DNA of 64,000 nt from Epiperipatus broadwayi (lineage: Eukaryota; Animalia; Onychophora): contig JAQFVV010000002.1 in NCBI GenBank assembly GCA_028023455.1, positions 30,442,001 through 30,506,000 of the forward strand. The letters are read 5' to 3'. The stretch's first letter is position 1; every line of letters starts with the position of its first letter. Made by a program: the position numbers and the translations under genes. Under the pieces are notes generated by a model. It saw nothing but the letters and a program-made list of their open reading frames with translations, had not been told where the DNA came from and ran no database searches. Below, piece by piece: positions 33,901 to 48,407 of the stretch.

Positions 33901-35766
33901 AACATTTAGCCTATTATTGTGGTAAAATTTGTTAAACAAATACTGTATGTTTATTAAACTTAAAGCAGAAGTTTGTCAAATTATTAAAGAACCATTAACT
34001 ATACAGTTTTTACATCATACTAAAATATTGTACTATCTTAAAACTGACAATTTATTTAACAGATATCAAATCCTCATTCCATTCTCTTCTTCCAACATAA
34101 TACCCACAAATTACTAATTTCGTATGCAATTAATTCATTATGCAAATTTAAAGCATATTTACATAACAAATTAATTAAAATAATATTTTTTTTGCTAGTT
34201 CCAAATTTTTGAAAGGTAAAAAATATGCTATTACTATATAACTTATTCGACTAGCCCTCTTGCTATCATGTTAAAAAGAAAAGCAGCCATTTTTAAAAAA
34301 TAAAAGGATTACACATAAGAAGATGGTTAAAAATTAAGTAAATAATTTCAGCAACTATTAATTAGGTAGAAAGAAAATTGTCAATAAGGCAACGACAAAT
34401 ACTCGACTATATATATATTTTTAAAGAAAACAATTTTTAACATCTTCCGTTTAAACAATGCACACATTCTATTCAAAATTATAGTCAAAAATAACTTAAG
34501 AAGCTAATGCTATTGTTAAACGTTATAGATATGAATATTTTAATATAATAATTTAAACGGAGAATGAAAATTTAAGACTTTATCATATGATAGGTAGACA
34601 TTTTGATTAACGTTGATGTGATTTTAAATTGTGCAATTTTTTATTGCAATTACTCCAAGCAATTTAAACTATCAAATAAATAGAACGAAGAAAAAAAAGT
34701 AATAAAAATTTACAAATTATTCTTTTCACGAGAACGTAATTATTTTTTTTTTTTAATATCACACCCTTCGAGTGCCTATGTATTATAAAAAAGATGATAT
34801 CTGCAAATTCAATGAAAAAATAGGTTTAGGAATGTTAATTATATATTCAAGTCTTTAAACTATATAACGAGTATCAACAATAATAGCTGACAAAACTTGA
34901 CCATCAGTTATAATTCGACAAGAATAAAAATAAATAAATATAAGGGGGAAAAAAGACCAAATCAATTTCATAACTATTATACGTTGTAATATATATCTAT
35001 GTATTAGAATATAATTATTAATGTTCGATTATTGTCAGTTTAAATTTGTTTGACCTCTAGTTAAACTGACCTATATATGTAATGGGATATTAAAAGACGT
35101 TTTGTAGTAAATTTTGTTTTTTAATGGATGAACATAATTGTAAATATGAATTTTTAAATGGCACTAAAAAATTAAGCCTACGTTTAGATTTACAACGGAG
35201 TTGTAAACACTGAAAATTAAACTGTATATTTACTATTTATTTAATATACTACTTTATAAATTTGAAAAATGTATAATCTTAAGGTTTTTTTGTTAAAAAA
35301 AAAATAGGGGAAATGCTTAATTTCAATATATTATTCAACGATTAGGCTTTAAAAGGGTAGCCTATTTTAAAAGCAATTATTTAATCAACACGCTGTAATA
35401 ATAAAATGTTAATATATAAATAATTTCTAGAAATTTTTATGTGACAAAGAAAAGTTATATAATAATAAAAAAATCCAATGGTTATAATTAAAAGAATTAA
35501 TTATTATACAGCTTTTCGGTCGATCAACAATCAGCCATATTTGTAAAAGTCATGGCTGAACATGACGTATCCGAATTTGTTAATTCTATATTATTATATG
35601 TGAATCCTTCATAAAACATGAAATATATGTTAAATTTTAAACATTCGATTATACATTTGGAAAACATATGATCACCATAACTTTTGAGAAAACCCTTTTG
35701 GTATGAGATCTGACTCAGGATTGGCCAATCATAAATTGGCAGCAAAGATTGCAATTCGATCCTTAC

Positions 35767-35972
35767 TTCAAACCCAAACCTTTCAGATGCTGGCCTATTA
35801 ACCGCACAATGTCCTGATCACTTCGTGATTTAAGTTTAGGAGTGATTTCTTTTTCCATTTCCCCGTTGATTCCACCATTTTCAGCCGATAAACAGGCACC
35901 ATTTTGCATGGAACTAGTCGAGGCTTGTTGTGATGTGTCTCCATTGTGTTGCGGACAGCCATTCGACTGCAT
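35767..35972 (-). CDS. WDR26: WD repeat-containing protein 26 orthologue, first coding exon from the first AUG (N-terminus and start of LisH motif)
   Basis: MQSNG..ACLSAENG..KSRSDQDIVRLIGQHLKGLGL matches recalled human WDR26 MQANG..[31 protein letters not shown]; phase-2 donor AA|gtaagg at 35767/35766. Confidence 0.95.
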
Positions 35973-36050
35973 GTTAACTGCAGAGAGACGTTGTTTTTTC
36001 CGCGGTGGCGGAGACACTCCACCGTCTTCCGAGTCCGAACTCGAGGCCAG
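35973..36050 (-). CDS. WDR26: Putative non-AUG-initiated N-terminal extension of WDR26 (LASSSDSEDGGVSPPPRKKQRLSAVN)
   Basis: Frame open and AUG-free from 36080 to the AUG at 35972; CTG at 36050 in AGC-CTG-G context (A at -3, G at +4); peptide resembles the recalled human extension ASSSSDSDTGGASPPPRKKPRQSAA. Confidence 0.7.
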
Positions 36051-36192
36051 GCTTGCAAAGAAATTCCGTGGTTTGTATTTTTAGTAAATACTAAACCACG
36101 ATTTAAAACGGTCAGGCATAAGAGTGATGAGAAATTAAGATACTCAGCTTCCTTAGACACTAAGCAGACTTCTAGTTCTTTATTTTGTTTGG

Positions 36193-36200
36193 TGACGTCA
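36193..36200. promoter_or_regulatory. CRE/ATF palindrome TGACGTCA in the probable WDR26 promoter
   Basis: Perfect 8-mer ~110 bp upstream of the open frame, within a locally CpG-rich patch (~35840-36230). Confidence 0.4.
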
Positions 36201-36944
36201 TCCCTGGCGATTCATGGGAAATTCCTATGCTCAAAAAGTTTTTATCTTATTAGCATAAACTTTTTGGTGTTTTAAATTTTAAATCCAGGGAACAAACATG
36301 TCATGAAGTGTCGAAATATATTTTTATAAGTTACGTTACATTTTTCTTTCTTTTAAAGGAAGTAGAAGTCTCGTTTTGAATGAAAATGATTCATTCTATA
36401 TCATATCTCATTGGTTGATCAATTCATTATTATTAATTATAAATGTAATGTATGCTATATATTTTTTTTATATATATAAAGTCGTGGCCCATAGTTTAAA
36501 AGATTAAAAATAATTTCCTGTTGTGGTTTGCTCTAATAAAATAATGATAGAATGGAAAAACCTTTTTTATATTCAAAGTGATAATATTAAATAGCCTATT
36601 TTTCAAAGCTATCCAAAAATTCTTTTAATCCTTCTTCCAAAATATTAAAAACAGTTCCATTCTTAACAATTGTTATATATTATTTAATAAAATTAGTTGT
36701 TCGATAAATTAATAACTGCATCTAAACATAAACAGTTAGTCGGACGGTGTTTGGACTAGCTCGTTGGATTTTTATAATTTTAATAAAACAATATAAACAC
36801 TATATTGGGCTGGCAAATAAAAAAATTAAGAGCTGTCTTGACATTACTAAATGAAAAATGTTAACAATAGTTATACATTAAACTATATACTGAAAGTTGA
36901 TAGTTTGAAACTTTTACGTATGTGATTACTACTTCAAAATCAAA

Positions 36945-39100: not shown

Positions 39101-41225
39101 CATTTCCTGCAGCTCTAAAGCATCTGCAAAATCTAAATGTCTTAAATAACCTCCATTTACTCTCACTCCTTTATCTTCTCATTTTAATCCACAAAATATT
39201 TCTTGCAGCACTGCTGAAAAAGTTTTGGATATAGGGAGCCACCCTGTCTTACACCCTTCTCAATAATGACTTTCCTAGTATCATTATGTAATCTAATTGT
39301 TGCTATTGCATTTTTATAAATATTCTTTAAAATATGACAATATCCTGGATCTATACCTTGATGATCCAATGCTTTAATCACTAGAGAAATGTTTATAGAA
39401 TCAAATGCCTTTACATAATCTACAAATCCAAAGCATTATGGCAACTCATATTCATTCGTCCTTTCTATAACTTCTCTCAATACCTGGATATGATCTACTG
39501 TACTAAAACCACTTTTAAATCCAGCTTGTTCTCTTGGTTGGTGGAAATCAAATGTTCTCTGTAGATAAGTTATAATTATCTTGGTAAAAATTTTGTATAA
39601 AACTAATAAAAGGCTGATAGGTCTGTAATTTCTAATAACTTCTTTACCACCTTTTTTAAATATTAATATTATTACTGCATTCTTCCAGTCATCTGGTACA
39701 TCTTTATCATTTAGACATTTGGTATATAACTTTGCTAAATTTTTTTCCAATTTCTTCACCTGCTTCTTTTTATTTATCAATTATAATTCCATCATTACCT
39801 GTGGGGCTATTCCTTTCTTCATAAATTTAATTGCATATTTCACTTCTTCATTTAAAATTCTGGGTAAATCAGAAGATATCATAGATATAGGAGATCCTTG
39901 TTCTTTATTACTATATAATTCTTGATAGAAGTCTTCTATCCATTTCATGACACATTCTTTTTAGTAATAATTCCAACTTTTTTCTTATTGCAGATATAAA
40001 TTTCCTATCAATACCAAAATGTTGTTTTACACTCTTGAGACTTTTATTCTCTTCTACAGCTTTTCTTGCTAGTTCACAGTTATACTTTCTTATATCATTT
40101 TCAACTCTTTTCCACACCATTTTACAAAATTTGAGATATTCAATCCTTTTTAATGCATCATTTTTGTATATCATCATATTCCTTTTTTTTTTCATAAATT
40201 CTTTAGTCTCAGTAGAAATTTTATTGGTCAATTGCTGCTTTTTTCTACCAGCTATCTTTGTTGCAGTTTTCAAAAGTGTATCAGTTATTTTCATATTAAT
40301 TTCATTCAAATCTGAATCATGTTCAAAATCCACTAATACTTGAAACCGATTTGTAAGTTCTAATTTAAATTCATTAGAATGTTTCTGAAGATTAGGAATA
40401 TCAACTGTAAATATTGTTTTTCTTAATAATTTTAATTTTTGTCTCTCTAGTTTTACATTAACACGTAACTTACACCTTACTAATCGATGATCACTTCCTG
40501 TGTTAAATTTATTAAGAACATTACAATCTTGAAATATGTATTTCCTGTTAGTCAAAATATAATCCAATTCTGCTGTACCTTCATTTGGATGCTTCCATGT
40601 CCATTTCCTTTTAACATTTTTTTCAAAAAATGAATTCATAATATAAAGTTTTTTCTTTTTCTGCAAACTCCACAAGTCTATGTCCTCTCTCATTTCTACT
40701 ACCATAACCAAAATTACCTACAGCAATTTCATCTTTCATTTGTCTACCAATTCTAGCATTAAAGTCTCCCATAACAATTTTAAAATGGTGTTTACTCTGA
40801 TCAAAAGCCTTTTGTACATCCATATAAAAATCTTCTACTACTTCATCACTATGAGAACTTGTTGGGGCATAAACCTGAATTATCTGCATTTGGTATCTGC
40901 TATTAAGTTGTATAACTTATCTTGCCACTCTGTCCGATACATCATCAATCTCCACAATGTTGTTCTTCCACTTTTTATTTCTAATGAATCCTACTCCACT
41001 TGTATTTCCAATATTTGTGCCTTTATAGTACAATATATGTCACTTTTTAAATCATTTATCTCTTCATCTTTTCTTCTAACTTTACAAAGTCCAATAATGT
41101 CCCATTTAATATAAGACAATTCTTCTTCTAATTCTTGCAATATTCCTTCACTTGAAAGTGATCTGCAGTTGTAAGTACTAAATAAAAAGTCATCATCAAA
41201 TGACAGCCTGGGTTGACAATTAGGG
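39101..41225 (-). mobile_element. RTE-clade LINE (APE endonuclease + RT), near-complete 5' ORF start, 3' part missing
   Basis: STYNCRSL..WDIIGLC APE N-terminus (~41090-41185); IIQVYAPT, GDFNA, LDYIL, SDH motifs; NYRPISLL, REQAGF, GVRQG and HLDFAD RT motifs; several frameshifts. Confidence 0.95.
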
Positions 41226-46095: not shown

Positions 46096-48407
46096 TTGCA
46101 GAAAAAGAAAAACTTTATATTATGAATTCATTTTTTGAGAAAAATGTTAAAAGAAAATGGACATGGAAGCATCCAAATGAAGGTACAGCAGAATTGGATT
46201 ATATTTTGACTAACAGAAAATACATATTTCAAGATTGTAATGTTCTTAATAAATTTAACACAGGAAGTGATCATCGATTAGTAAGGTGTAAGTTACGTGT
46301 TAATGTAAAACTAGAAAAACAAAAATTATTAAGAAAAACAATATTTACAGTTGATATTCCTAATCTTCAGAAACATTCTAATGAATTTAAATTAGAACTT
46401 ACAAATAGGTTTCAAGTGTTAGGAGATTTTGAACATGATACAGATTTAAATGATTTAAATGAAATTAATATGAAAATAACTGATACACTTTTAAAAACTG
46501 CAACAAACATAGCTGGTAGAAAAAAGCAGCAATTGACTAATAAAATTTCTACTGAGACTAGAGAATTTATGAAGAAAAGAAGGAATATGAAGATATACAA
46601 AAATGATGCATTAAAAAGAATTGAATATCTCGAATTTTGTAAAATGGTACGGAAAAGAGTTGAAAATGATATAAGAAAGTATAACTGTGAAATAGCAAGG
46701 AAAGCTGTAGAAGAAAATAAAAGTCTCAAAAATGTTAAACAACATTTTGGTATTGGTAGGAAATTTATATCTGCAATAAGAAAAAAAGATGGAATTATTA
46801 CTAAAAAGAGAGATGACATCATGAAATTGGTAGAAGATTTTTATCAAGAATTATATAGTAATAAAGAACAAGTACCTCCTATATCTATTACATCTTCCGA
46901 ATTGCCCAGAATTTTAAATGAAGAAGTGAGACATGCAATTAAGTGTATGAAGAAAGGAAAGGCTCCAGGAAATGATGGAATTATAATTGATATATTAAAA
47001 GAAGCAGATGAAGAAATAGAAACAATTTTAGCAAAGTAATATACCAAATGTCTAAATGATAAAGATGTACCGGAAGATTGGAAGAATGCAGTAATAATAT
47101 TAATATTTAAAAAAGGTGATAAGGAAGATATTAGAAATTACAGACCTATCAGCCTTTTATCAGTTTTATATAAAATTTTTACCAAGATAATTACAACTCG
47201 TCTACAGAGAACTTTGGATTTCCACCAACCAAGAGAACAAGCTGGATTTAAAAGTGGTTTTAGTACAATAGATCATATCCAGCTATTGAGAGAAGTCATA
47301 GAAAGGACAAATGAATATGAGTTGTCATTATGTTTTGGATTTGTAGATTATGAAAAGGCATTCGATTCTATACACATTTCTTCAGTGATTAAAGCATTGG
47401 ATCATCAAGGTATGGTTTCCAGGATATTGTCATATTTTAAAGAATATTTATAAAAATGCAACAGCAACAATTAGATTACATAATGATACTGGAAAAATCA
47501 ACATTGAGAAAGGTGTAAGACAAGGTGACTCCATATCTCCAAAACTCTTTACAGCAGTGCTGCAAGAAGTATTTTGTGGATTAAAATGGGAAACTAAAGG
47601 AGTGAAAGTAAATGGAGAGTATTTAAGTCATTTAGATTTCGCAGATGATGTAGTTGTTTTTGCAAATAATGCTTCAGAGCTGCAGGAAATGTTGCAGGAG
47701 TTAGCAGATGAAAGTAGAAAAGTAGGACTAAAGATAAATGTTAAAAAGACAAAAGTAATGTTTAATCGATTTGCTCAAAATATGAAAATAAAGATTGATT
47801 ATGAAGAATTAGAAGAAGTTAACAGTTACAAATACCTTGGTCAGATTATTAATACAGATGGAAACATAATGGAGGAAATTAATCATAGAATTAAACTTGT
47901 TTGGAGTGCTTTTGGTAGAAATAACTTGATACTAAAAGGAAATATGCCTATGTGTTTGAAAAGGATGGTTTTTAACAAATGTATTTTACCAGTTCTTACT
48001 TATGGATCTGAGACTTGGACACTTAATAGAAGAGCAATACAGAGACTTCAGACCACTCAAAGGAGTATGGAGAGATGTATGTAGGGAGTAACAAGAAGAG
48101 ATCGAAAACGCAATGTATGGGTAAGACAACAAACAGGTGTTATTGACCTTATTGAAAAAATTAAAAGATTGAAATGGAGTTGGGCTGGATATATTGCTAG
48201 AAGAAATGATAATAGATGGACAATTGAAATTTTAAACTGGATTCCAAGAGATTGTAAAAGACCCAGAAAGAAACCACATGTGAGATGGATGGATGAAATA
48301 AGAAAATGTGCAGGGGTGTTGTGGAGAAGAGAAGCTAAAGATCGGAGAAGATGGATTAAACTTGGAGAGACCTTCATCCTGCAGTGGATTGATAATGGTT
48401 GATGATG
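46096..48407 (+). mobile_element. RTE-clade LINE, 5'-truncated, intact 3' end, 13-bp TSD
   Basis: TSD aagaaaagttagt at 46083-46095 and 48408-48420; APE C-terminus, RT (REQAGF, GVRQGD, HLDFADD), gatgatg tail; one stop (47037-47039) and frameshifts near ~47410 and ~48080. Confidence 0.97.

Follow-up and report, generated by a model that had tools for sequence, protein, structure and literature searches.

The window contains the first exon of WDR26

The window, the stretch of 64,000 nucleotides of Epiperipatus broadwayi DNA that was analysed here, carries on its minus strand the first exon of the gene for WDR26, a substrate-receptor and assembly subunit of the CTLH ubiquitin ligase. The exon is delimited by the following features:

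35767–35972, minus strand: AUG-initiated part of WDR26 exon 1 (tblastn E 5e-28 with full-length WDR26 transcripts)
35970–35972, minus strand: AUG of the annotated type (MQSNG...), in the context gttaacATGc
35761–35766, minus strand: 5′ splice donor GTAAGG of a phase-2 intron (AA/GTAAGG; the last exon base is 35767)
36081–36083, minus strand: in-frame stop codon TAA that bounds the extension frame, by direct reading

The 3′ end of exon 1 encodes the start of the LisH motif (DQDIVRLIGQHLKGLGL, 35819–35769), and the orthologous exon of a related genomic locus (L005) ends at AA/GTAAGT, exactly where a related transcript (L024) departs from the genomic sequence. Exon 1 of the window is 65% identical to L007 and covers WDR26 only up to the first half of LisH; L007 itself, a full-length WDR26, matches the human protein of PDB 8qbn with an E-value of 1e-269. 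A protein search with exon 1 returned no match above 66% identity. At the homologous main AUG, position −3 is a purine in all of the sequences listed for comparison. No further WDR26 exon was found within the window by tblastn with seven full-length orthologues, and since none lies in positions 1–35766, intron 1 must be longer than 35.7 kb. The GC content is 0.34–0.68 across about 35700–36250 compared to about 0.22 in the flanks, a profile that fits a single exon including its leader. No repeat overlaps the extension site. Elsewhere in the window, we noted two decayed copies of an RTE-like non-LTR retrotransposon (endonuclease and reverse transcriptase) at 39187–40711 on the minus strand and at 46122–48084 on the plus strand; the best database match of the RTE-type ORF, at 48% identity, was a scorpion 'craniofacial development protein 2-like' protein.

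Upon direct reading of the minus strand, the WDR26 frame was found to continue upstream of the main AUG for 36 sense codons (36080–35973, translation KYKPRNFFASLASSSDSEDGGVSPPPRKKQRLSAVN) without an ATG. The initial annotation, made from the sequence alone, had described this AUG-less frame of 36 codons and the stop upstream of it, together with an in-frame CTG at 36050 that has A at −3 and G at +4; all of this was borne out, and the translation is exactly as it was written there. Thirty-six open codons are not significant by themselves at the local GC content (P about 0.1, a rough estimate); the significance of the open frame comes from the comparative evidence.

Amino acid conservation upstream of the main AUG

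To compare the upstream frame with that of other animals, we used the 105 residues of the exon-1 frame as a phmmer query against 1.8 billion representative proteins. The search returned 83 matches, for the most part short ORFs called on contigs of genomic or transcript origin; most cover query residues 8–105 and thus include the extension:

35973–36050, minus strand: 26-codon N-terminal extension, Met/Leu-ASSSDSEDGGVSPPPRKKQRLSAVN, an open frame conserved in 50 distinct sequences

About 86–88 related loci were compared, giving 50 distinct extension peptides. The contigs used for comparison are mostly metagenome or run assemblies without a taxon label, and lineages were split by sequence, with no tree; counts of 25–50 lineages or sequences reported here are therefore not fully independent of one another. 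The shared pattern reads (S/T/I/A)-L-A-S-S-(S/G)-(D/E)-S-(D/E)-D-G-G-x-S-P-P-P-R-K-K-x-R, with M-Q-x-N-G a few residues further on. In the protein alignment (A1), the extension and the LisH segment form two conserved blocks, and the first ~50 residues after the AUG are far more variable than the extension.

Mean entropy at the first, second, and third codon positions was 0.74, 0.65, and 1.56 bits in the extension, compared to 1.59, 1.75, and 1.76 bits in the 30 nt upstream, and the dN/dS of the extension was 0.08–0.44 (Nei-Gojobori, 11 pairs). An AUG-less in-frame ORF lies above the main AUG in 47 of the 50 related sequences, and the frame is open in all lineages although its length changes between 23 and 98 codons. 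Collectively, the comparison supports purifying selection on the extension as a protein.

Between the CTG and the main AUG, a single ATG in any frame was found in 2754 nt from 25 lineages. By contrast, 7.9 would be expected from codon-order shuffles, of which only one in 2000 was as low, and 31 from base composition. Leaky scanning from a weak upstream start to a downstream AUG requires such an AUG-free interval. No Rfam family matched the site.

An invariant CTG at the 5′ edge of the conserved region

The conservation begins at a single codon:

36048–36050, minus strand: proposed CUG initiation codon of a long WDR26 isoform, CTG in 50 of 50 distinct sequences
36047–36056, minus strand: initiation context gcaagcCTGg, with A at −3 and G at +4
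36051–36080, minus strand: 10 open codons from the stop to the CTG, without a near-cognate codon

The CTG at 36050–36048 is surrounded by gcaagcCTGgcc and is the first in-frame near-cognate codon downstream of the TAA. The first leucine of the LASSS...GG.SPPPRKK.R motif is encoded by CTG in all 50 distinct sequences, whereas only 35% of the other leucine codons of the same exons are CTG. The base at −3 is a purine in every one of the 50 (A in 48, G in 2) and that at +4 is always G, with a consensus from −6 to +7 of G C (A/C) A G C CTG G C (C/A) T. Among 26 lineage representatives, this leucine codon shows zero entropy at each of its positions, and third-position entropy is at least 0.97 bit in all other codons of the extension. 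An invariant CTG in a strong context thus marks the 5′ edge of cross-lineage conservation. As judged from the sequence comparison, zero entropy combined with a coding signature is the mark of a coding region that opens with a start codon, not of an ordinary leucine.

No peptide conservation across lineages was detected upstream of the CTG in the comparative alignment, and positions 36051–36080 are most likely untranslated leader. Folding of the region downstream of the CUG gave no stable or start-enhancing RNA structure (z-score 0.18). In some clades, conservation reaches further upstream of the CTG: in vertebrates (LLTTAALGEET), in arthropod-like loci (FHHG), and in a large group of probable oligochaetes. 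Initiation may lie further upstream in these clades. An in-frame AUG is present 20 codons above the CTG in at least one lineage (L027), and gene models of several crustacean species place the protein start at upstream AUGs, hence the mode of initiation is not uniform across lineages.

Transcripts of relatives

Seven metatranscriptome contigs (L007, L017, L024, L030, L031, L063, and L068) are spliced WDR26 mRNAs, full-length or nearly so, that span the leader to the WD40 propeller with the extension in frame. In-frame stop codons lie close above the CTG in four of them:

L007 and L017: in-frame stop 8 codons above the CTG
L068: in-frame stop 7 codons above the CTG
L063: in-frame stop 1 codon above the CTG (TAA AGC CTG)

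None of these four has an in-frame AUG from the stop to the CTG, and no ATG occurs in the leaders of L063 (367 nt) and L024 (125 nt). Colinearity between transcript L024 and genomic L005 begins about 105 nt above the CTG and extends to the AA/GTAAGT donor, and leader, extension, and exon 1 are uninterrupted by an intron in this pair. A candidate splice acceptor in the window, ctctctgcag/TTAAC (35981–35979), was considered and rejected: its bases encode S-A-V, it is not conserved as an acceptor, and the corresponding sequence is retained in the mRNAs of relatives.

Elements of the probable promoter and the leader

Upstream of the extension, we noted three further elements:

36193–36200, strand not assigned: palindromic CRE-like TGACGTCA, 150 nt upstream of the CTG
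36081–36119, minus strand: candidate 12-codon uORF from ATG 36119 to TAA 36083, in the frame of the extension, with c at −3 (weak)
36066–36078, minus strand: leader motif ATACAAACCACGG, which contains ACC-ACG-G, conserved and out of frame in the window

The CRE-like element TGACGTCA is shared by 12 genomic lineages at a distance of 128–168 nt above the CTG, the window included (the others are L001, L004, L005, L006, L009, L021, L022, L023, L026, L041, and L061), and lies at −247 in L003. It is absent from transcript leaders, and in the L005/L024 pair it lies about 60 nt upstream of the transcript 5′ end. The sequence directly after it reads CC(A/G)(A/G)(A/G)CAAAATAAAG in the window, L004, and L021. 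The element is probably a conserved core-promoter element, and by analogy transcription in the window would start near 36150–36160, about 100 nt upstream of the CTG. The ATG at 36119 would be inside the leader only if transcription starts upstream of it, which is possible and is what homology suggests; in that case, the short ORF may act as a small regulatory uORF and lower the use of the CUG.

The window and L003, L005, L007, L009, L017, L024, L026, and L087 carry the sequence (A)CCACGG about 19–25 nt above the CTG. It is out of frame in the window, as it is in arthropod-like loci, so its conservation is at the nucleotide level. In the arthropod-like sequences (L005, L007, L009, L017, L024, L026, and L087), its ACG opens a frame of five codons (ACG, three sense codons, and TAG) that runs from −20 to −6 and in every case ends 5 nt before the CTG. 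It is possibly a minimal upstream ORF with a non-AUG start. In the window, where TTG replaces TAG and the spacing is one base shorter, this frame is absent.

Motifs of the extension

Two short motifs make up the core of the extension:

36018–36044, minus strand: Ser/acidic cluster SSSDSEDGG, conserved as S-S-(S/G)-(D/E)-S-(D/E)-D-G-G
35988–36014, minus strand: SPPPRKKQR, a Ser-Pro beside a basic K-K-x-R, resembling a nuclear localization signal (NLS)

By pattern match, SSSDSEDGG fits consensus sites of CK2, and the S-P of SPPPRKKQR would be a site for a proline-directed kinase. The P-P and K of the second motif are invariant in alignment A1, and KKQR (35999–35988) fits the classical monopartite NLS pattern K-(K/R)-x-(K/R). 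SPPPRKKQR could serve as an NLS, or as another short linear motif, that differs between isoforms.

When L007 with its extension was modelled by AlphaFold2 from a shallow alignment of 11 sequences (A2), the extension had a pLDDT of 24–32, and the CTLH region and the propeller were modelled at high confidence. The extension is thus predicted to be a disordered tail carrying short motifs. No ordering of the extension, such as docking on the propeller, was seen in this model, a weak negative with an alignment of only 11 sequences. Established N-terminal rules for Met-Ala-Ser suggest removal of the methionine and N-acetylation. A CUG-started protein would begin with Met-Ala-Ser, and its mature N-terminus would be N-acetyl-ASSSDSEDGGVSPPPR.

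The vertebrate counterpart and the age of the extension

A non-AUG extension of WDR26 is already known in vertebrates. Ivanov et al., 2011 (PMC3105428) described a human extension from ACG and CUG together with Western-blot bands, and gave its conservation within vertebrates only. Zhu et al., 2018 (PMC5834625) located a human CUG (chr1:224622083, strong Kozak) and an ACG, 24 nt apart, and identified a peptide from the human 5′ UTR, ASAAEGVGEPGASAGR, by mass spectrometry. A 2022 survey listed WDR26 among the genes still without an annotated non-AUG proteoform.

Vertebrate orthologues read ...TLASASSSSDSDTGGASPPPRKK(H/R/A)RASAAEGAGE..., also given as ...LLTTAALGEETLASASSSSDSDTGGASPPPRKK.RASAAEGAGE..., and the published human peptide is located just after the SPPPRKK-type motif of vertebrates. 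For the vertebrate matches in the phmmer search, the best-scoring stretch against the window is the extension alone. One of them (P0055), about 93% identical to human WDR26 over LisH-CTLH, shares 12 of 15 residues (80% identity) with the segment GGVSPPPRKKQRLSA of the window. In a vertebrate-like sequence (L003), which reads ACC ACG GCC ... ACT CTG GCC, the ACG lies 24 nt upstream of the CTG, the same spacing as that of the human sites; the CTG of the window is therefore the counterpart of the human CUG and not of the ACG. The CUG, common to all lineages, is the better candidate for the ancestral start, and the in-frame ACG would be a vertebrate addition. On this comparison of sequences, the extension in the window is orthologous to the published non-AUG extension of vertebrates.

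Outside vertebrates, the motif was found in named crustaceans, namely the amphipods Trinorchestia and Hyalella, the crayfish Cherax, the mantis shrimp (stomatopod) Oratosquilla, and the porcelain crab Petrolisthes, and a decapod-like genomic locus that is 79% identical to Cherax reads aca CTG gcc. Crustaceans, this decapod-like CTG locus, and vertebrates together place the extension in both protostomes and deuterostomes, and orthology to the vertebrate extension gives it an age of at least the last common ancestor of arthropods and vertebrates. The non-AUG form of WDR26 thus appears to be far older than published. Most of what the initial annotation had proposed is consistent with these data. 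Of the motif, described there as almost identical to that of human WDR26, the segment GGVSPPPRKKQRLSA shares 12 of 15 residues with the vertebrate P0055; codon-position entropy and dN/dS are both of the coding type; amino acid conservation in other invertebrates, on which the proposal of a translated extension depended, was found in many lineages; and a bilaterian ancestry of the non-AUG extension is supported by its sharing between protostomes and deuterostomes with an invariant CTG. Its parallel to a human ACG start needs amending: a human non-AUG extension is indeed published, but it is the human CUG that the CTG of the window matches.

What looks new is the sharing of the extension by protostomes and deuterostomes, contrary to the independent origins in flies and vertebrates proposed by Ivanov et al., 2011. 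In the literature, we found no report of the extension in invertebrates other than flies, and no link between the fly gene name CG7611 and non-AUG initiation. YPEL5, a partner of WDR26, is by its name presumably a paralogue of YPEL1, YPEL2, and YPEL4. These three genes also appear in the list of deeply conserved non-AUG extensions of Ivanov et al., 2011 (PMC3105428).

Possible fly-type extensions and distant WDR26-like sequences

We also noted three metagenome or metatranscriptome contigs (L069, L070, and L073) with an AUG-less frame of 114–134 codons that begins at a conserved TTC AAA ATT just after the stop. Their extension retains (A/T)SPP(P)RK(K/R).R upstream of the AUG and resembles the AUU type of flies, which hints that the fly-type extension may be a remodelled version of the same ancestral extension. 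Distant WDR26-like sequences (L071 and L081–L086, with LisH RLIGQHLCDVGL or ANIGL) carry SPPRKR(G/V)R N-terminal to LisH, and in L081 the SPPRKR motif directly follows the AUG (MSSPPRKRGR). A motif of the SPPRKR type may be older than the CUG arrangement.

Discussion

We consider it probable that a single exon-1 mRNA directs the synthesis of two proteins, a CUG-started long WDR26 and the AUG-started form. A scanning ribosome would meet the CUG at 36050 first, in a strong context, and a fraction of ribosomes would initiate there with Met-tRNAi to give a form that is 26 residues longer. The extra segment of this long form would be a disordered tail in which a Ser/acidic cluster is followed by SPPPRKKQR. 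The remaining ribosomes would scan through the AUG-free stretch and start at the AUG at 35972 by leaky scanning. In relatives, the extension evolves as coding sequence, opens with an invariant CUG, and is carried by mRNAs that lack a usable AUG for it; we infer that the same applies to the species of the window.

Several other readings of the region deserve consideration. In one, the region is simply an untranslated 5′ leader, and its conservation reflects a DNA or RNA regulatory element with no peptide made. Nucleotide-level conservation nearby is real, for example that of the CRE-like element at −150, and the frame of ATACAAACCACGG in the window differs from that in relatives. Within the extension itself, however, third codon positions are free while first and second positions are fixed, the dN/dS range of 0.08–0.44 is that of a protein under constraint, and the frame is open in all lineages despite the changes in length of 23–98 codons. 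Moreover, there is neither an Rfam match nor an unusual predicted fold, and a peptide of the homologous region in human was seen by mass spectrometry (Zhu et al., 2018; PMC5834625), which makes a purely regulatory leader very improbable. Chance offers an even poorer account: a stretch of 36 stop-free codons at this GC content is estimated to arise roughly once in ten cases, yet a functionless open frame is effectively refuted by all of the comparative evidence, and we regard its probability as next to nil.

The remaining readings accept a translated extension and differ in where translation starts. An AUG might be supplied by an upstream exon or an alternative promoter, spliced in frame between 36080 and 36051. 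A pyrimidine-rich tract and an AG do precede the CTG (possible site ttctttgcaag/c), and upstream AUGs occur as protein starts in several crustacean gene models and, 20 codons up, in frame in L027. Yet the AG is not conserved, being missing in L002, L003, and L006; transcript L024 is colinear with genomic L005 across that point; seven transcripts have in-frame stops and no AUG upstream; and the third-position invariance of the CTG would be left unexplained for an internal leucine codon. We find this reading quite improbable. GTG can also initiate in eukaryotes, and the ORF listing contains a GTG-started ORF from 36017, so that initiation at another near-cognate codon such as GTG 36017–36015 would yield only the SPPPRKK part. 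The valine is not conserved, though (V, L, S, A, T, E, or I across lineages), its context is weaker, with T at +4, and purifying selection on the upstream ASSSDSEDGG requires translation from at or above the Ala codon, which together leave this reading highly improbable. Initiation at the CUG, followed by leaky scanning to the AUG, thus remains the reading that we favour.

If this reading is correct, annotation based on AUG codons alone loses, in many animals, a conserved, motif-bearing tail of 26 residues from a subunit of the CTLH E3 ligase. That such an isoform might be missed had been anticipated from the window alone, and AUG-only annotation does omit the tail; the structural and biochemical WDR26 constructs that we examined likewise start at or after the AUG. 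Only a few cases are known in which conservation of a non-AUG start codon extends outside vertebrates. A CUG that has stayed unchanged from arthropods to vertebrates would rank among the oldest conserved non-AUG starts, and would revise the published separate origins of the WDR26 extensions in flies and vertebrates. In invertebrate models, the role of the long isoform would be accessible by mutation of a single codon.

The ratio of CUG to AUG starts is sensitive to the levels of eIF1 and eIF5 and to stress. In the CTLH ligase, the propeller of WDR26 binds to a basic degron/NLS in NMNAT1 that is mimicked by the N-terminus of YPEL5 (Gottemukkala et al., 2024; PMC7616709). The NMNAT1 degron, PGRKRKW, and SPPPRKKQR are both short, proline-flanked basic motifs, and that of NMNAT1 is reported to double as an NLS (PMC7616709). 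By analogy, SPPPRKK.R could, beyond a role as an NLS, be an in-cis mimic of the degron that is read by the propeller, leaving the CUG isoform self-inhibited or self-targeted. We regard this as unlikely; NMNAT1 and YPEL5 bind the propeller, whereas for the WDR26 extension there is a resemblance only, and its pLDDT is 24–32. Were it true, the Ser/acidic cluster would be a phospho-switch, the CUG:AUG start ratio would set the activity of the ligase, and the arrangement would have been retained since the bilaterian ancestor.

The closest known system is the extension of human and other vertebrate WDR26. It belongs to the same gene, lies directly above the MQ.NG start with no AUG from the upstream start to the main AUG, and has the same core motif, LAS..S(D/E)S(D/E).GG.SPPPRKK.R, and the same CTG, likewise flanked by A at −3 and G at +4 (act CTG gcc in L003). 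Vertebrates differ in having an extra ACC-ACG-G start 24 nt (8 codons) above the CUG, whereas ACCACGG in the window is present but out of frame, and in a spacer of 60–79 codons between motif and AUG compared to 26 in the window. Among protostomes, the Drosophila orthologue of WDR26 likewise carries a non-AUG extension, but it is initiated by AUU instead of CUG and was judged to be of independent origin (Ivanov et al., 2011; PMC3105428). Beyond WDR26, the high-molecular-weight nuclear isoforms of FGF2 (PMC2121090) come from an unrelated protein, with several CUGs and an IRES. As proposed here for WDR26, a single FGF2 mRNA combines CUG starts with an AUG further downstream; the FGF2 extension carries a basic nuclear-targeting sequence by which its isoforms differ in localization, and a similar difference between the two forms of WDR26 may be inferred.
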